Assembly: GCA_950097015.1 (NCBI GenBank)
Contig: CATNEN010000007.1
Location: 9,548,001-9,612,000 of the forward strand
Reading direction: 5' to 3'
Length of the DNA stretch: 64,000 nt
Origin: Macrostomum hystrix
Taxonomy: Eukaryota > Animalia > Platyhelminthes
The notes under the pieces were generated by a model. That model was given only the letters and a program-made list of their open reading frames with translations, made no database searches and was not told the origin of the DNA. Both the position numbers and the translations under genes were made by a program. This document shows positions 3,501 to 23,988 of this stretch, in pieces. Each line of letters starts with the position of its first letter. Positions within the stretch are counted from its first letter, which is position 1.

Positions 3501-6082
3501 AGTCGATATTCGAATGACTGAACGATAATTTTGCACACCCGATTCGACATTAACCCGTTGCCTCATTTATTTCGCTTTTCTTTTTAATCAAGGCTGAAAA
3601 TTTTAATTGCTCAATTGGGCCTTGGCGCTGTACCTGCTGCGAGCTGTGTGAGCAATTTTCTCATCTCTCATGATAATTCTGGCATTTCAGCTGCGTGCAC
3701 CTGGCACTCACATCTTTTCCGCCTAACTCTAATCCCATTTTTAATTGCATCTTCAATCCATTCTTGCAGTTTATGCCTTGTTGACTGTTCCAAGGGACAA
3801 GTGCTGCCGCATTTGTTAGTGGATTACTCTAAGTAGTATTGCGGAGAGGAGAGTGAGCAGATGGGTCGGGAGAGTGAAGAGAAACGTGGGGAAAGTGGGG
3901 AGAAGAGATGGTAGAAGAGAGGGGGATGGGGAGAAGAGATGGTAGAAGAGAGGGGGATGGGGAGAAGAGATGGTAGAAGAGAGGGGATGGAGAGAAGAGA
4001 GGGGAGATGCGCAGAAGAGTGAGGAGAAGAAAGGGGAGAAGTGAGGGAATAGTGGGGGAAAAGGGATCGGAGAGTGAGAGAAAGGAGCCGCAGAACCACC
4101 TGCGGTTCCTGGAGGTGCGCATGTGATGAATGAAATTCGCGGTCCTTCTCCGCCCAGGTGGACGCAAGCAAGCTGGAGGCGGGCCGGGCCTACGTGCAGA
4201 TCACCTTCGTGCAGGCCGAGACCAGCGAGGACGGCAGCTCGCGCCAGTTTGTCCTGGAGACGCCGTTCACGCGCAGTGGCGATCGGCACGGCAGCGTAGA
4301 GGACCAGTGGCGCCGGCGCACCCGCCTCACCGTCGAGGCCGCCTTCCCCACGGTGGTTAAGCGGCTGCGGGTGGTCCGTGTGGAGCACGAGGACCTCAGC
4401 CCGCTGGCTGTGGCCGTACTGGAGCTGCGCGCTGCCGCAGTCAAAATCCGTTCGGCTGCGGAGGCCGAGCCGCCCGACATGAAGCGGCTGCAGATGGTGC
4501 TGCAGGGCTGCCTGGCTACGCAGGTGAGCGGCCGCTGGAGCTGCGATTTTCATCCGACTCTGCTTGAGGGACTTTTTTAGATTTCGGAGTCTCTGATCTC
4601 AGAAGTGACTGCATGATTTAGGGCTGATTGATTTCTTAGTTTGGAGTGACAGATTCATAACTAAGGTGTGACTTTTCTTTGTTGTGAGTGACAGGTGCAT
4701 CAGTTGTGAGTGACAGGTGCATCAGTTGTGAGTGACAGGTGCATCAGTTGTGAGTGACAGGTGCATCAGTTGTGAGTGACAGGTTCATCAGTTGTGAGTG
4801 ACAGGTTCATCATCGTGAGTGCCAGGTGCATCAGCGTGAGTGACTGGTGCATCAGTTGTGAGTGCCAGGTTCATCATCGTGAGTGCCAGGTGCATCAGCG
4901 TGAGTGACAGGTGCATCAGTTGTGAGTGCTAGGTGCATCAGCGTGAGTGACAGGTGCATCAGTTGTGAGTGACAGGTTCATCATCGTGAGTGACAGGTGC
5001 ATCAGCGTGAGTGACAGGTGCATCAGTTGTGAGTGACAAATTCATCAGCGTGAGTGACAGGTGCATCAGTTGTGAGTGACAGGTGCATCAGCATGAGTGA
5101 CAGGTGCATCAGTTGTGAGTGCCAGGTTCATCAGCGTGAGTGACAGGTGCATCAGCGTGAGTGACAGGTGCATCAGTTGTGAGTGAAGGTTCATCATCGT
5201 GAGTGCCAGGTTCATCAACGTGAGTGACAGGTGCATCAGTTGTGAGTGACAGGTGCATCAGTTGTGAGTGACAGGTGCATCAGTTGTGAGTGCCAAGTTC
5301 ATCAGCGTGAGTGACAGGTGCATCAGTTGTGAGTGACAAATTCATCAGCGTGAGTGACAGGTGCATCAGTTGTGAGTGACAGGTTCATCATCGTGAGTGA
5401 CAGGTGCATCAGCGTGAGTGACAGGTGCATCAGTTGTGAGTGACAGATTCATCAGCGTGAGTGACAGGTGCATCAGTTGTGAGTGACAGATTCATCAGCG
5501 GGAGTGACAGGTGCATCAGTTGTGAGTGACAGGTTCATCAGCGTGAGTGACAGGTGCATCAGTTGTGAGTGACAGATTCATCAGCGGGAGTGACAGGTGC
5601 ATCAGTTGTGAGTGACAGGTTCATCAGCGTGAGTGACAGGTGCATCAGTTGTGAGTGCCAGGTTCATCAGCGTGAGTGACAGGTGCATCAGTTGTGAGTG
5701 CCAGGTTCATCATCGTGAGTGACAGGTTCATCAGTTGTGAGTGCCAGGTTCATCAGCGTGTGTGACAGGTGCAGCGGCCCTCCCGCAGGTGCACGCCGGC
5801 CCCATGGCCTACGCTCACGCCTTCCTGGCGCCGAATCGGCGAATCGCCTACACGGGCGACCGGCGGCTGCAGGAGCTGGAGCACGAGTTCACGGAGCTGC
5901 TGAGGGCCTGCAAGCTGGGCCTGCGAGTGAACAAGGCGCTGGTTCGCTCCGACCAGATGGAGTACCACCAGTGCCTGGTCAGCGGCTATGAGAAGCTGCG
6001 CGACCAGCTGCTGCTGAGGGACCCCGGCGACGACTGTCTGTCACTCAGCAGCCAGCTCAGCCAGCTGGACTCGCAGGCCTGA
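541..6082 (+). CDS. Dedicator of cytokinesis (DOCK-C/D, DOCK6-11-like) Rho-GEF, 3' part including DHR-2; 5' exons lie outside the window
   Basis: GT-AG exons in compatible phase: 541-607, 700-753, 923-1014, 1483-2295, 2477-2958, 4158-4523, 5789-6082. Motifs LADSYSHTPSLRLTYLRNMAERH, AERYEL, FYRVGLYG..FVYKEP, AYVQITFV, FVLETPFTRSG, LQMVLQG..QVHAGPMAYAHAF. Confidence 0.93.
1108..1425. repeat. Intronic compound repeat built from 7-bp units (atcccgc/attccaa/atcgcaa)
   Basis: Tandem 7-mer variants inside DOCK intron 1015-1482; explains the overlapping spurious ORFs. Confidence 0.9.
3055..3258. repeat. Degenerate intronic tandem repeat (gggatttgtg...ttcgagtt)
   Basis: Imperfect ~21-bp periodicity in DOCK intron. 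Confidence 0.7.
3843..4085. repeat. Purine-rich (GA) low-complexity tract with ~32-bp tandem copies
   Basis: ggggagaagagatggtagaagagag repeated three times within DOCK intron. Confidence 0.75.
4681..5772. repeat. Intronic minisatellite, 21/22-bp unit (gtgagtgacaggtgcatcagtt), ~50 copies
   Basis: Tandem array fills most of the last DOCK intron (4524-5788). Confidence 0.97.
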
Positions 6083-15266: not shown

Positions 15267-17762
15267 CTAGCCGGGCCTCGAGCCCGCCTGCTCCACCCGC
15301 AGCCGGATGCCCGCCTCCATCTTGCCGGCGATGTAGCGGAACACGGCCAGCCAGGCGCGGTCCACCGCCCTGCTGTGGCTGGCACCCAGTCGGTCCTGCA
15401 GTGCGAAGCTGATGGCCGGCCACAGCCTCTGGTGTTCCGGGGGCAGAGTTTTTTATCTCACTTTAGTACAGCCAACAGAGAAGCCAATCGCATTAAGTGG
15501 GTCAAATCGGGTCAATCAGAATCTGTGTGGGTCAAGTCGGGTCAATCAGAATCTGTGTGGGTCAAGTCGGGTCAATCAGAATCTTTGCGGGTCAAGTCGG
15601 GTCAATCAGAATCTGTGTGGGTCAAGTCGGGTCAATCAGAATCTGTGTGGGTCAAGTCGAGTCAATCAGAATCTGTGTGGGTCAAGTCGAGTCAATCAGA
15701 ATCTGTGTGGGTCAAGTCGGGTCAATCAGAATCTGTGTGGGTCAAGTCGGGTCAATCAGAATCTGTGTGGGTCAAGTCGAGTCAATCAAAATCTGTGTGG
15801 GTCAAGTCGAGTCAATCAGAATCTGTGTGGGTCAAGTCGGGTCAATCAGAATCTGTGTGGGTCAAGTCGGGTCAATCAGAATCTGTGTGGGTCAAGTCGG
15901 GTCAATCAGAATCTGTGTGGGTCAAGTCGAGTCAATCAAAATCTGTGTGGGTCAAGTCGGGTCAATCAGAATCTGTGTGGGTCAAGTCGGGTCAATCAGA
16001 ATCTGTGTGGGTCAAGTCGAGTCAATCAGAATCTGTGTGGGTCAAGTCGGGTCAATCAAAATCTGTGTGGGTCAAGTCGGGTCAATCAGATGGTTGGACT
16101 AATGGCCGCAGGAATATGTGAGGCATTTGCTGGATTCCTCTGTGTCAGCGAAAGAAGCGCAGACAGTTGGGCCAGCACGAGCCATTCAGCTCATAAATAT
16201 TTAGGATTTGAAAGTTCCCCCCAGAGAAATCACAGCCCACCGCCTGGCTGGACCTCGGTGGACAAGACCCAGTGAGGCCCAGGGCACCCCGGGCTAAGCA
16301 TCGATTGCAGCTTCTTTCTGCAGCCTTCTCAGCTGGTGTTGGGGCATTGTGCGCAGTCCCTGACAGACCATGAGGTGCTCGGGCCGCACACTAAACGCCC
16401 AGTGCGCCTGGCCCAGCGCCAGCAGCACGGAGTTCAGCATCAGCGCATCGTCCAGACAGTCGACAGCCGCGCCCAGCGCCTGCATCACCGCCAGGCCGTG
16501 GCGCTCGAGCTTGCGAGCGTCGAACTGCGCGCGCCCGTCCTCGCCGGCCGCTTCGCGGCTGTCCGCTTCGCCGTCCAGCCGCATCAGCCTGCAGAACAAG
16601 CTGCGCAGATCCGCGTCCGTCTGGAACAGCCTTTGGGATCGGAAATGAGGGGATTTAACAAAGGGGATCTGAAGAGTGGGAAGATTCAGCTAAGGGGATC
16701 TGAAGAGTGGGAAGATTCAGCTAAGGAGATCTGAATTGTGGGAAGATTCAGCTAAGGAGATCTGAATTGTGGGAAGATTCAGCTAAGGGGATCTGAAGAG
16801 TGGGAAGATTCAGCTAAGGAGATCTGAATTGTGGGAAGACTCAGCTAAGGGGAACTGAATTGTGGGAAGATTCAGCTAAGGGGAACTGAAGAGTGGGAAG
16901 ACTCAGCTAAGGAGATCTGAATTGTGGGAAGATTCAGCTAAGGAGATCTGAATTGTGGGAAGACTCAGCTAAGGGGATCTGAAGAGTGGGAAGATTCAGC
17001 TAAGGGGATCTGAAGAGTGGGAAGATTCAGCTAAGGGGATCTGAAGAGTGGGAAATTTTAGTTAATCGGATCGTTGACTTTTTCTGATGAAATGAATCAT
17101 AATTATAATTTATGCTGAAATTTCGTACAGCGCAGCTTGTTTGCCGAAATCTCATTCGATATCTGCCTGACTCTAGTCTAAGTGACACCTGCAAAAGTCT
17201 CGCCGGCTGCGGGGCATTTGAAGGCTGCCTCCCCATTTGCGTCATTAATTATCTAGATCGCCTGAGAAGTAGGCCCGCATCTCTGCAGCCCTTTTAGGGG
17301 AAATAATTTCAGGAGAAACGTTCACTAATCCCTCGCCTTCTCTTCCACGCCGCCTACGGCTCTCTTTGACAATGTCTGGCGGCCCCGCGGCTGCGTCGCA
17401 GATTGGGCTAAACTGAGATTTGAGGGCCAATGAAATCAGATTCTGACAATCACCGAGTTGAAGCGCCTCACCTGCCTTAAGGAGCTGAATACCTTAATCT
17501 GCGAGATTAATTACACCTAGCTTCAGGCACTGAAGGCTTAATTTATCAATTTTTCGGGCCAGTTATTAAAACTTCGCGGCCCCTCAAACCTGTTGAATAT
17601 GGCGGCTCCAGTTCCGGGCATATCAGCGCTCAGCAGCTGCCAGGTTTCGCGCACCAGTGCCACCTGCACCGGGGTCAGGTGATTGCCAATCTGGTCATTC
17701 AGGCTGCGCTCCACTGACCGCGGCGGAGGCGAGGAACCGGGCGTCGAGAAGCCGCAGCCCAT
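15267..17762 (-). CDS. Globin with N-terminal acylation motif (globin X-like), 198 aa
   Basis: Exons 17762-17590, 16630-16369, 15428-15267 in phase. LTPVQVALVRETW (A helix), LRSLF (CD1 Phe), LERHGLAVM (E7 His), LGQAH (F8 His), AWLAVFRYIAGKM (H helix); N-terminus MGCGFS. Confidence 0.92.
15495..16090. repeat. Intronic minisatellite, 30-bp unit (gggtcaagtcgggtcaatcagaatctgtgt), ~20 copies
   Basis: Tandem array in globin intron 2. Confidence 0.97.
16660..17055. repeat. Intronic minisatellite, 31-bp unit (gggaagattcagctaaggggatctgaagagt), ~12-13 copies
   Basis: Tandem array in globin intron 1. Confidence 0.96.
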
Positions 17763-18679
17763 GCTGCTCTGTGTGGACTGGATGGCCGGTGGGGATCGAC
17801 CGAGAAATCAGAACTGTCGATGGCAGTTCGGCGTGAAGGGAGCTGGTTCTCAACTTTATTTAACAGCCCGATGTCCAGTTCTGATTGGTCAATCGGAAGT
17901 GAGCCAATAGCAAAGAGCTCATAGCTTTCCGTCAGTTCGGCCAAGGTGGACATGACGAAAGTGACGTTTGAAACATAACGACGGATGGATTAGGACGCCC
18001 GCTCCCCTGACCCTGAGCACACACACGCAAGGGAGATGCACCTCTGCCCCCCTGACGCACAATCCTATTGTCCATCAATAAGAGTGTTGCACATCAAGCA
18101 CCGGGCCTTCTCTTCACGACCCCCGCGCCTGCGTCTCAAAAGGAATTTATTAACAGTCCGAAATCGGGCAGCCAGGCTAAAGAGAGAACTCGGCTGAAAT
18201 ATAGGGAAGTAGATGTGAAAGACGAGCTAACAGGAAACAAAGAACACACAGAGGAGGCGGGCAGATGCAGAACAGGAAATGACGGACAGTGAGCTCAGCA
18301 AAAGACTCCCAACGTAGGCCAAATAATTGAAATAAGTCAGCTCAGGTAGATTAGTTATCAGGTGTATACACCGATACATCCTACAACTCGTAGAAGAGTT
18401 GTGCTTGTTCTGAGAGCTGATTAAAATATGAATTTACATAAGGCTCGGCAAAATGCGCCGAATTCTTTGTTACGAGGCTTCAAATGTACTTTGTGACGGT
18501 CGGGTTGGCCGTAGGAGGAGTTGGGATAAAAAAATATCCGCTGATTTCACTTCTTTCGAATAACAAAATACAATTGCAACATTTGGTGCGTACATTTTCA
18601 GTTGAGAAAAACAGAAATAGTTAGTTGATGAGAAAAGCAATTTTCAGGCCTGAGTTGCCCGCCTCATACGCCTCACTCG

Positions 18680-21453
18680 TTATTCTCCCGGACCATTCGC
18701 GTACAGGGGCTCGCTCTCCGCCTTCCTGGACTTAATAAGCTGCGTCCTGGCCATTTCCTTCGTTTTGCTCATTGCCACCGCATGCTCGGCGGCCTCCGCC
18801 CACTTGATTGAGTAGTCTATGGGGTTTGTGCAGGTGCCGCCGCGCTCCGGGTACACGTGCGACATCAGCATCTGCGTGGGAGGAGTGGCGGTTGTGAAAC
18901 GTGTCGAGTTTTCAACTCCGAGACAATGAGAGTCTTGACGTTGAGAAAGTTAGAACAAATAAAGGGCGGCGACTCTGAGATTTTGCGCATTTATCCGTGA
19001 GCCTATGATGGCTCAATGGCTAATGAAATGTCCTGAACGAAGCAAAGTCTAAGTCAGCTACCTCCATGCGATCATTCTTCGGCTCCAAGCTGCCCCACTG
19101 CTGGCGCTTCTGCACCGCCTTCCATGGCGTCGACTCGACCGTTCTGTTCTTCGTCTTACGGTAAGGCGCCCGAAGAGAAATCTCGCCGAACATTCGCTGG
19201 CTCGCGCCGGTGCGCTGGTAGTTGAAGTACAAATCCGTGTTGTCCGGGGTGGTCTCCTTCAGAAACATGGACACCACGGCTGAAGTCCCGTACGGCTTGC
19301 GGTTCTTGTAGGGTGGGAAGAGCATGCTCATCATCTTATCGCACTGGTCAATTGCAGAGTAGCTGGGACCACGGATGTCCACAATGAGATACTTCAGCCA
19401 GCGGTAGCTCCCCATGCGGCGGTTCAGAATGCGGCGAGTCACCTGAGGGGATTGATTCAGAGGTTTAAGACTGCCTGACTGTGCCCTGTCTGATTTATGT
19501 TAGTCCTTACAATTTAACTGGACAATGATGGGGACCAGTCAAACTCTGGGGAGTACTGAACTGCTAGCTGCCTCACCTCAATCTCACACAATGATGGGGA
19601 CCAGTCAAACTCAGGGGAGTACTGAACTGCTAGCTGCCTCACCTCAATCTCACACAATGATGGGGACCAGTCAAACTCAGGGGAGTACTGAACTGCTAGC
19701 TGCCTCACCTCAATCTTACACAATGATGGGGACCAGTCAAACTCAGGGGAGTACTGAACTACTAGCTGCCTCACCTCAATCTTACACAATGATGGGGACC
19801 AGTCAAACTCAGGGGAGTACTGAACTACTAGCTGCCTCACCTCAATCTCACACAATGATGGGGACCAGTCAAACTCAGGGGAGTACTGAACTGCTAGCTG
19901 CCTCACCTCAATCTCACACAATGATGGGGACCAGTCAAACTCAGGGGAGTACTGAACTGCTAGCTGCCTCACCTCAATCTTACACAATGATGGGGACCAG
20001 TCAAACTCAGGGGAGTACTGAACTACTAGCTGCCTCACCTCAATCTTACACAATGATGGGGACCAGTCAAACTCAGGGGAGTACTGAACTACTAGCTGCC
20101 TCACCTCAATCTCACACAATGATGGGGACCAGTCAAACTCAGGGGAGTACTGAACTGCTAGCTGCCTCACCTCAATCTTACACAATGATGGGGACCAGTC
20201 AAACTCAGGGGAGTACTGAACTACTAGCTGCCTCACCTCAATCTCACACTTAGTTCGACTGGCAACCGAACGGAAGCGGCCCGGATCGACCAGAAAGGCC
20301 TGGATCATTTCGTCCGACAGAAAGATGATGAACTCCTTAATGTGCACGTCTGCGAACACGCCTATGCAGCCGATGACCATGCCCTCCTTCTCGAGGTGCC
20401 CAACTGACAGCCTCCTACGTACCTCCTTAGCTTCGTCGTCTTTGACCGGGCCGCGCATAGCGTCCACATTCTCGCCATCCATGTAGCGCTTAAAGTGGCG
20501 CAGGGCGTCGTCAACCTCGACTTCCTCGCCTTCACCGCCCTCATCTTCGTATTCATCGCCGTTTCCATCGTCGTCTGAGTCGCCTTGGTGTTGGGAGGGT
20601 TCATCCTGATAGCGCGCGGCGCCATCAACCGATGAAGATTCCGAAGCGCCCTTCTGCCCCGCCTGCATGTACCGAGCAGTTTTGATGGAGCTGCCTTCGC
20701 TATCTGGACTAAGACTAAGTCCAAAACTAGTGGTAAAACTACCACTGGGTCGTGTTGCAGATCCAGCATAATCTCTACCATTATCAGGTGATCCACTGTC
20801 AGAACTAAATTTTTTGCCAGTTTTGGCTGTATAATTAGCTTGGCTGAAAGTTGTGGATTTTGTGACGGCCAAATTTGTGGCATTATCGGTGCCACGAGCC
20901 TGCGGGGAAGCTTCGTCAGAGACGCCACTTCTATCAGCCGACTCATACTCGATTGAGCCCTGCCCACCCATCCTGAAATTACAGGACAAGAGATAGAGGA
21001 CTAAATATAGGTTCTCAAAAGCTTACTCTTAGTACTCTTGTCTGATTCAAAAGCTCAATCCTGAGCATATCAAGAACCAGAGAGGCCAACTCACGCATTA
21101 GAAAAGTTGGAGTCGCTGTCCATGATGATGTTGATGTTGAGGTCAGCGGTGGCTCCAGTGGGCTGAATCTCTGTCTCGACCCGAGTGTGCTGGCCTGTCT
21201 TGGACAGGTGCACCTGAACGTCTTGGATGCTGGGCACCATGTTGCTGTTGTTGTCCGCATTGACCGCGTGCAGCATCTGCTCATAGACCCCGCCGGCCCG
21301 CATGGGCTCGTACTTGTACAGGCCATCGAAGACGCGGCAGCTAGATTCCAACCCGCTCTTACTGCTGCTGCCTCTGTCGTCGCTGCTGCTGCAACTGCTG
21401 GAGCTGCTGCTGCTGCTACCGCTGTTCATGCCTTTCTTCTTCTTTTCCTGCAT
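18680..21453 (-). CDS. Uncharacterised protein with Ser-rich/acidic N-terminal half and a degenerate KH-like domain
   Basis: Exons 21453-21095, 20972-20237, 19442-19062, 18871-18680, all GT-AG and phase-compatible. Joined sequence IFLSDEMIQAFLVDPGRFRSVASRTKCEIE|VTRR...LIVDIRGPSYSAIDQCDKMM follows KH hydrophobic spacing but lacks GxxG. Confidence 0.75.
19523..20249 (-). repeat. 66-bp tandem repeat, 11 copies, each spanning the exon 3' end and 5' splice donor (GAG|gtgagg)
   Basis: Unit translates stop-free as C[E/K]IEVRQL[V/A]VQYSPEFDWSPSL; the first copy contains the exon end at 20237. Confidence 0.96.
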
Positions 21454-21826
21454 TTTTTAGCTGAAAGAAAAATCGATCTCGCAGTGGACCCAGCCGCCCT
21501 GGCTTAGCTCGGCTATGCTGCTTCCATAGCAGCAAAATGACCGAAATTCATTTTGGCCATAGACTGTTCCCCTGCCTCAATTAGAAAGAACAAGGCAATA
21601 GGGCCACTAGGCCAGGCAATACCGAATATTTGCGAACTAAGCTATGAAATGCGCTCGTACATGTAATAGGAGAACTGCTTGTATGAATAGACAATTTTCT
21701 TATTTAGTTTCTATAGTTTGCGGAAAAAAAATTTTCGTAAGCTGATTCAATAAGTAGATTGATCAAGTAAGAGTCGGATCAGATTCGCATATTAAATAAC
21801 TGTTGATTATTTAACTGCGCTTGTGA

Positions 21827-22266: not shown

Positions 22267-23988
22267 CAAGGACTACTAAACAACACAGGACGTTGCAATC
22301 GCGTTTTGTGCAAATTTTTCAGAAGGCTGGCTAAATGATGCTAAAAGTCTATGGCATATGCTTTATTAATATATGCACGTAGCTCAATAGGAACTTTCAG
22401 AAAATATTTTAGGAGTCAAAATGTGTATTTAAATGAACATTTTTACGAATTCTGTACCAGTTGTTTCTTATGTTTTTTAGCAGGTGCACATGCAGTGTCA
22501 AATAGAAAAAATAGCGGTTGGTTCGCGTTTATCGGATTTTGCACTATCCATGGCGTCGAATCGCCAGATTGGAACAAGCGAAAGCACCGCTGATTGGTAA
22601 AGTGGTTGTCGCAAATTAGGCTGACCACTGTGCCTCCGAATTGCTTAATGATTCCAATGAGGCGAACTACTTGATTGTGCAAAAATTCTGCCTGTAGGCT
22701 GAAGATTGGTACCAACCGGGCAACAAATGCAGATGCACCCATGAATGGTTTCACCATTATAGGCAGAACAGTTCGTGCTTTCTGGTCAGGGGCATCCTCT
22801 GCAGAGCCAATGACATGACAACCTCATGGTTGTCATGATGGTTTGACATAAACCTCGTCAAAAATGATTGAGCAGTATCGCTGGTTTTATGTATAGTGCT
22901 GAAATTGAGCCTCAATAGTCTTTATACAATCACTGTCTGATCCCACTGTGCCGAGACCTCCAAGATGTCTTCTCAATGTCGCAGGATGCGGTAGGTGTAA
23001 GGTTTTTCTGCAGACACGGTAGCTCTGACGGCTTGAAAAGTACAAACTTTCAGACATTAGAATGCCTTTAGATTCATATCTTGTGTTGGCAGACGACGTA
23101 AAACATAGCTCTACTTGCCTAGCAATGAATTCTTGGCGAATATCTTGAGAGTCTCGGCTGAGAGACTGCAGAGCACTGATGTGAGACAATGCTTCGATCG
23201 AAGAAGTAGGCTCTGCAAATTTGACCCGATTGACAATCGCTTCTAGTTGGCTAAATCTTTCCAATTTGTGCTGGAAACCAAGTAGATCGCGAATATTGAT
23301 AGGCGTGTTGCATCTGTAAGCAGAAACTGAAAAATCATTCTGCACACACACGGACTGCTGAACTTGTCGTTCTTGTACAATGAAGAAATTGACTCTGAAC
23401 TCCTCCCGCTGCGCCATCCATTCTCCACTCGAAACAAAACTGAGTGTAAAAGCAGTCAGGAGGAAATTCGCCCATGAGACGATTCTATCAGCAGCATTGA
23501 ATGTAGAGAGCTCATCAGGCGAGCGATTGCGCTCATTTATAAGAACGCCGCGCTGCTTTGAGCGCCTCAATTTTTCTGAAAGGTAATATTAGTCACGTAA
23601 TAGGTGAACAGTATAACTCAACTCATGTCAGTAGTAAGAAACCTTGTCCTAACTTACTGGACACCGTCTGACGAAAGGAACTGGCTGGAGCGCAATGAAA
23701 CACAGATGGTGGATCAATCGGACGTGTGTGATTCTTCACCTTGAGCATCCGTGCGTTCTCAGGCTAGTGCTTTTTACAAACACCCATGTACTGATAACGA
23801 ACTGAGATAGAAAAGCAGACTTAGGACAACTAAAAGTAAAAGGCTAAACTATATGCGTTCCTTTTGAGCTACGTGAATTTATTATATAATAAAGCATATG
23901 CCATAGACTTTTAGCATCAGTTAGCCAGCCTTCTGAAAAATTTGCACAAAACGCGATTGCAACGTCCTGTGTTGTTTAGTAGTCCTTG
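22267..23988 (-). mobile_element. Internally deleted P-element-superfamily DNA transposon
   Basis: ~110-130 bp TIRs starting CAAGG; exact 8-bp TSD gtgactat (22259-22266, 23989-23996); disrupted transposase pieces YRVCRKTLHLPHPATLRR, FDEVYVKP, SLICDNHFTN, FFLFD. Confidence 0.9.

Follow-up and report, generated by a model that had tools for sequence, protein, structure and literature searches.

The closest described counterparts of the locus studied here come from humans and amphioxus. In IVS7 of the human F7 gene, a 37-bp minisatellite has been reported with a first monomer that straddles the exon 7/IVS7 boundary. Its pseudo-sites, which are identical to the authentic donor, were found to be functional, yet even after being strengthened they never competed with the functional site lying furthest upstream (PMC1557585). 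Two further junction minisatellites, in LMNB2 (100 bp x 10-15) and in PDGF intron 4 (81 bp x 16-18), appear in the summary given by the same paper as arrays from which only the authentic donor is used; in IFI6 (6-16) and CBS IVS13, again as far as that summary describes them, the first two pseudo-donors are constitutively used and longer mRNAs result (PMC1557585). In amphioxus, tandem duplications of exon-intron boundaries, termed 'mirages', have been described in the Adh3 and globin genes, where regular splicing is undisturbed (PMC3087553).

Here we describe an array of this kind from the flatworm Macrostomum hystrix, located in a gene on the minus strand of a 64-kb stretch of genomic DNA (the window, whose numbering is used below unless another contig is named). 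Throughout, a slash within a nucleotide or protein motif marks a junction, except where it separates alternative bases or residues.

Gene structure and anatomy of the array

As defined by transcript contigs and open frames, the gene comprises four exons and 1668 nt including the stop (555 codons). Exon 1 (21095-21453), which is coding from the ATG at 21453 and ends in phase 2 before GTGAGT, is supported by its open frame, by RNA contigs from runs X5 and X6 and by homology to the N-terminal part of the Macrostomum lignano protein P0001. In the X5 and X6 contigs, 21095 is spliced to 20972 and an intron of 122 nt with GT..AG borders is left out. Exon 2 (20237-20972, 736 nt), supported by homology and covered without a break by RNA contigs over 20233-20971, has a translation ending in RSVASRTKCEIE, and its last 13 nt (20249-20237) form the exonic part of the first repeat unit. 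The authentic donor GT (20235-20236, in the context GAG/GTGAGG) follows directly and opens intron 2, which measures 794 nt as spliced (19443-20236) and closes with a unique 3' tail (19443-19521) ending in the acceptor CCCCTCAG. Exon 3 (19062-19442; 381 nt, 127 codons), present in the RNA contigs, encodes the most conserved part of the protein, with 31 representative proteins matched by phmmer, the best of them 85% identical. The coding part of exon 4, with the stop codon, occupies 18680-18871; it is supported by a joint from 19062 to 18871 that skips 190 nt, by its open frame and by matches to the C-termini of P0001 and P0002.

With respect to relatives, the exons were searched apart, and those of exon 2 were scored on residues 150-251 of the read-through frame described below, the length of that frame only setting the length filter. 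The best relatives are three uncharacterised M. lignano proteins (P0001-P0003), which are 66-79% identical at the end of exon 2 and at most 85% identical over exon 3, and the gene family has at least 17 matches in the same genome. Pfam returned no domain for exons 2 and 3, nor for nine homologues, and the translated repeat gave low-complexity noise only, with no single stretch over threshold. Searches of the ESM Atlas and the PDB by sequence gave no secure fold name for the gene product, and Foldseek against the PDB produced weak KH-like or ferredoxin-like rows (best E 0.006), such that the fold is left unnamed here. The gene is uncharacterised and comes from a flatworm, which places the architecture in a new phylum.

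The array itself, the sole one that TRF reports at 19522-20249, consists of 11.0 copies of a 66-bp unit on the minus strand (98% matches, no indels, score 1379) and is a repeat far beyond chance. Counted in register from 20249, each unit combines the last 13 nt of exon 2 with the donor GAG/GTGAGG and 47 further intron bases, and reads GTGT[G/A]AGATTGAG/GTGAGGCAGCTAG[T/C]AGTTCAGTACTCCCCTGAGTTTGACTGGTCCCCATCATT. The array begins 13 nt 5' of the donor at 20236, and the first unit thus holds the real exon end and the authentic donor. From there the donor is copied identically into the intron, as seen in 11 occurrences of GAGGTGAGG with 66-nt spacing. Specifically, the donor GTs lie at 20236, 20170, 20104, 20038, 19972, 19906, 19840, 19774, 19708, 19642 and 19576; all 11 are phase 0, and all share their sequence from -13 to +53. 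A single acceptor serves them (AG 19444-19443, exon 3 beginning at 19442), and the corresponding introns run from 794 and 728 nt down to 134 nt in steps of 66. The frame is stop-free across all units, ending at the TAA at 19516-19514 (minus strand), and amounts to 491 codons of read-through (19514-20989); the array is also open in one plus-strand frame. These results, from TRF, a register script and the RNA joint described below, confirm two claims of a preliminary description of this DNA, namely that the junction is duplicated 11 times in an open 22-codon unit and that 11 identical phase-0 donors face one acceptor at 19442.

The copy number of 11 is a figure of the genome assembly alone (chromosome-scale, 42 contigs, 220 Mb), and the contigs from the RNA runs do not cover the intron; the real array might on these grounds be shorter or differently organised. 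We regard such an artefact as very unlikely, given the ordered unit variants with their clean four-unit higher-order pattern, the chromosome-scale assembly in 42 contigs and the abundance of similar arrays. Moreover, two units would already give the same architecture.

Donor use and the significance of the open frame

Evidence on splicing was drawn from assembled contigs over 18600-21500 in four public runs (X1, X3, X5 and X6) from two studies with three organism labels. The run type 'RNA' was guessed by software; the contigs skip all three introns, however, and are therefore transcripts. Contigs from X5 and X6 match the window with no differences, and those from X1 and X3 differ from it at three places each. 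In all four runs a single joint was observed, leading from the donor GT at 20236 to the AG at 19443, with exon 3 starting at 19442 and 794 nt skipped between GT..AG borders (listed as 19438 to 20233, 'cut +4', with contig depths of 3.9-30). The contigs that bear this joint continue through unique exon 2 sequence to 20971.

The sequence 5' of the inner donors reads CATCATTGTGTRAGATTGAG or CCATCATTGTGTRAGATTGAG, that 5' of the first donor reads TCGAACTAAGTGTGAGATTGAG, and products of the inner donors would carry the peptide QLVVQYSPEFDWSPSLCK. No contig piece from the four RNA runs falls on 19473-20151, and no loose end was found in these runs at 19442 or 20249, where an inner-donor product would diverge. 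Likewise, transcripts from the second or third donor with extra units, of the type described for IFI6 and CBS, were absent among the contigs, joints and loose ends. The ten reiterated pseudo-donors (19575-20170; GT 20170 to 19576) are accordingly used by no RNA contig. The homologues agree with this picture: the M. lignano proteins P0001-P0003 read RTKCEIEVTRRILNRR (RTKCEIE/VTRRILNRR) without an insert, and the end of exon 2 (RTKCEIE) followed by the start of exon 3 (VTRRILNRR) reproduces this reading exactly. Taken together, these observations establish that the exon-intron junction is real and that, at contig level, the normal mRNA uses only the most upstream donor.

For the M. lignano paralogue P0002, an AlphaFold2 model based on a 22-sequence alignment is poor overall (pLDDT 58), but residues 250-350 or thereabouts form a single confident alpha/beta domain (pLDDT 82-97). 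The alignment of exon 3 with P0002 covers residues 302-428, which places the junction between residues 301 and 302, inside a predicted beta-strand at 299-311 (pLDDT 88-96). Judged from this model, inserts of 22-220 residues would probably split a core strand and be damaging.

In terms of the open frame, shuffling leaves a 66-nt unit stop-free in a given frame 31% of the time, 39% of windows taken from the same sequence are likewise stop-free, and the period is divisible by three in 33 of the 77 arrays found in 264 kb around the locus (a survey defined below); the joint chance of a unit being both in frame and stop-free is about 0.13-0.17. As the units are near-identical, the 726 nt of openness count as one event and not as eleven. 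The unit variants comprise two non-synonymous changes (E/K and V/A) and one synonymous change, and at the level of sequence they show no sign of coding constraint. The openness of the frame is probably meaningless. A coding repeat was considered and is rejected on the evidence of the RNA contigs, the homologues and the paralogue described below; annotators should be aware that the read-through frame of 491 codons does not correspond to a gene product.

These results bear directly on the ladder of isoforms with 0-10 peptide copies that the preliminary description had put forward. In such a scheme, the inner donors would be used in some tissue, stage or individual to insert 1-10 copies of a 22-residue peptide, with array copy number setting the range. 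The identity of the donors from -13 to +53, their shared phase 0 and the stop-free units, whose products escape nonsense-mediated decay (NMD), are all compatible with it, and the summary available for human IFI6 and CBS describes constitutive use of the first two pseudo-sites (PMC1557585). Rare forms would also be compatible with the contig data: assembled contigs lose low-frequency variants and resolve neither tissues nor stages, such that inner donors may be used rarely or in particular tissues. Nonetheless, repeat sequence is absent from the contigs and loose ends of all four runs, the homologues lack an insert, the insert site lies inside a confidently modelled beta-strand of a conserved domain, and both the openness of the frame and the 2:1 ratio of non-synonymous to synonymous variants are as expected by chance or without constraint. 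We therefore think a ladder decidedly unlikely. A form retaining the intron, which had also been envisaged, fared no better, as neither contigs nor loose ends fall on the array in the four runs; a single spliced product with no ladder, the outcome named beforehand as contrary to the proposal, is what we find as far as the assembled contigs show.

Origin and genomic setting of the array

The closest paralogue in the genome (L007, 77% identical) carries an intron of about 462 nt at the identical codon, with a donor junction reading GAGATTGAG/GTGAGA (also written TGCGAGATTGAG/GTGAGA) and an acceptor reading TTAATTCAG/GTCACCCGC (TTCAG/GTCACC). No tandem repeat was found in this paralogue's intron. 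The intron position is thus old, and the array is private to the studied copy. Furthermore, the 66-bp unit was not found elsewhere in the 220-Mb genome (42 contigs); being unique to this locus, it does not derive from a dispersed repeat or transposon, an origin that we had considered.

Both boundaries of the unit start with GT, as seen in CTAA/GTGTGAG on the exon side and CATT/GTCCAG on the intron side, an arrangement that would fit slippage or microhomology duplication of a 66-bp piece. The units differ at three positions only, and the variants at positions 5 (G/A) and 27 (C/T) recur with a four-unit period. This periodicity delimits two blocks of four units and 264 bp each (20117-19854 and 19853-19590, minus strand; together 19590-20117) that are identical, with 0 differences between them, which indicates that the last expansion was a recent multi-unit duplication, evidence of change and not of polymorphism. 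The sole private change is carried by unit 11, at the edge of the array, as expected under homogenisation by unequal exchange. Since 134 nt separate the acceptor from the last pseudo-donor, intron 2 had this length before the array grew. Overall, we see here a young, locus-specific intronic minisatellite that is most likely neutral and not an isoform-making device.

Minisatellites are abundant around this locus. Within the 64-kb window, 13 arrays make up 9.3% of the sequence, and in a 264-kb survey that combined the window with 200 kb sampled from C7:9148001-9538000 (pieces L017-L036, 10 kb per piece), 77 arrays with a period of at least 10 and at least 4 copies account for 17%. GTRAG motifs on one strand are found in about a dozen of the 77, a number that we estimate to be roughly as expected from unit length. 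Only the studied array begins inside an exon, and one junction-spanning array among 77 may, as a rough inference from n = 1, reflect chance placement in a gene-dense, array-rich genome. The next-best donor-spanning candidate (L018 9419-9837) was rejected, as it starts about 75 nt inside its intron and holds no copy of the junction.

The prevalence of such arrays, most of which are unrelated to splice sites, is also relevant to a possible quantitative role, in which the ten extra U1-binding sites would alter splicing efficiency or transcript level and array length would tune dosage without changing the protein sequence. Intronic U1 sites can influence RNA processing, ten strong donor motifs are present here within 660 nt, and the repeat number of F7 IVS7 is reportedly associated with factor VII levels. 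However, the paralogue and the homologues work without an array, and arrays of this sort are very common in the genome; a regulator of this type seems to us unlikely. The same holds for a wider proposal, which we rate as improbable, in which inner donors used in some tissue, stage or individual would yield in-frame proteins that escape NMD and carry 1-10 copies of the 22-residue Cys/Trp peptide, a fast-evolving array setting the range, or in which, in a milder form, array length would tune splicing efficiency through the ten additional U1 sites.

Several other features of this region were recorded. An array of 39 bp x 51.5 at L017 4860-6867 contains 51 GTGAGTAG motifs. On the plus strand of the window, a 1.1-kb array at 4684-5773 is built of units of about 21/43 bp with a 150-bp higher order and holds about 50 GTGAGT consensus donor motifs. 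It sits in an intron between a donor at 4524 (CAG/GTGAGC) and an acceptor before 5789, and its unit contains CAG/GTGCA, which resembles the true acceptor junction GCAG/GTGCAC. As it starts about 160 nt into the intron, this array is no copy of the donor junction. The exons on either side of the intron encode LQGCLATQ/VHAGPMAYAHAFL, which looks like the end of a DHR-2 domain of the DOCK family. On the minus strand, the neighbouring gene at 16294-17762 is globin-like and starts with MGCGFSTP, presumably an N-terminal acylation-type motif as in globin X. An array of 31 bp x 12.7 (16661-17054) fills the intron before its second coding exon, with an acceptor-like CTCTTCAG in the unit, and a further array of 30 bp x 19.8 (15497-16090) lies just downstream of the gene.

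Upstream of the studied gene, a contig from run X3 leaves the genome at 21495 into 23 nt that read TCCAGTTATATTATTCATCCATG on the strand of the gene. This string has 17 exact copies in the genome, most of them arranged as inverted pairs with a spacing of about 3,155 bp (C1:11090703/11093858 plus eight more pairs), and the inverted pairing identifies it as the terminal inverted repeat of an approximately 3.2-kb DNA transposon. A spliced leader, the other candidate for this loose end, is ruled out by its being the end of that repeated element, and the X3 strain probably has a transposon copy just upstream of the gene. Further upstream, open frames of 104 and 227 codons at 22443-23570 (minus strand) lie in an AT-richer stretch that has no obvious link to the gene and may be a transposon remnant.

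Choice of the first donor and comparison with known systems

The explanation that we consider highly probable as a whole is that of a neutral, young junction minisatellite spliced at its first donor. A 66-bp segment (13 nt of exon and 53 nt of intron) would have been tandemly duplicated between two GT dinucleotides, presumably by slippage or unequal exchange, and expanded to 11 units, with the final step copying a four-unit, 264-bp block. The intron would in this way have grown from 134 to 794 nt and gained ten exact donor copies. With splicing at the original, most upstream donor, the ten copies leave with the intron and the protein remains unchanged. The first donor would win through its position, the functional 5' splice site furthest upstream being preferred, in parallel with F7, and selection may add to this effect, as an insert would split the core beta-strand.

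Several observations bear on why position is invoked. The intron RNA folds no better than shuffled sequences and indeed worse (z = +2.67), which makes masking of the inner donors by structure unlikely, and we discarded this possibility. Between -13 and +53 the inner donors do not differ from the used one and are therefore not weaker, and their products, being in frame, would escape NMD, which consequently cannot hide them. The difference that remains between the first and the inner donors would appear to be position. The preliminary description had alternatively suggested that ten near-identical donors must be suppressed. The non-use that this entails fits the data, but active repression does not find support, the work on F7 suggesting a most-upstream preference instead (PMC1557585).

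If exon 2 were recognised as a whole, the first donor would likewise be chosen. In classical constructs with duplicated donors, the one closest to the acceptor can prevail, and the short introns of flatworms might favour pairing across the intron. Given such constructs and short introns, use of the first donor is here an observation and not a prediction. Moreover, the pseudo-donors are strong (GAG/GTGAGG) and their products are in frame, and inner-donor forms could persist at a low level.

The observed joint would look the same if the intron were removed recursively, in 66-nt steps that each regenerate a donor at AG/GT and lead to the same final mRNA. Every unit ends in an AG/GT (within GAG/GTGAGG), and a YTNAY-like TTGAC is found about 30 nt 5' of it; the sequence leading up to each AG, however, is purine-rich and not pyrimidine-rich (CATCATTGTGTGAGATTGAG). 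Intermediates are not visible in the contigs, a data type unable to show them, and stepwise removal is not needed for a 794-nt intron, which is of ordinary size. We consider this route extremely improbable.

In structure the studied array is a junction minisatellite, and in behaviour it belongs with the F7/LMNB2 group. As in F7 IVS7, the exon end and the authentic donor both lie in the first unit, identical copies of that donor follow ahead of one acceptor, the most upstream donor alone is represented in normal mRNA, and no masking RNA structure was found. The two arrays differ in that the unit here has 66 bp (13 exonic and 53 intronic) in 11 copies, compared with 37 bp (4 and 33) in 5-9 copies, in that all inner donors are in frame here and most are out of frame in F7, and in the flatworm host. 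LMNB2 and PDGF, to the extent that they are described in the summary cited above, share the long donor-spanning units and the exclusive use of the authentic donor, and differ in gene and taxon. In IFI6 and CBS, with the same restriction to that summary, the minisatellite likewise starts where exon and intron meet and contains many repeats of the donor, but pseudo-donors are used there and none is used in the transcript contigs here. The amphioxus mirages resemble the studied array in copying a border, in their concerted evolution and in their diverged edge units (unit 11 here); they differ in occurring in a cephalochordate, at acceptor sides as well, with units of up to about 160 bp and with documented somatic and allelic instability.

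As both the architecture and its usual outcome have already been described in humans and amphioxus, the finding changes nothing in the general view of how genes work. Its modest value is that of a natural experiment, in which a single flatworm acceptor is contested by eleven donors that share their sequence from -13 to +53 and in which, every alternative product being in frame, the absence of inner-donor products is not attributable to NMD. This suggests that Macrostomum could suit studies of 5' splice-site choice and of intron growth by minisatellites. The locus extends the behaviour in which the most upstream donor wins, as seen in human F7, to a distant animal lineage.
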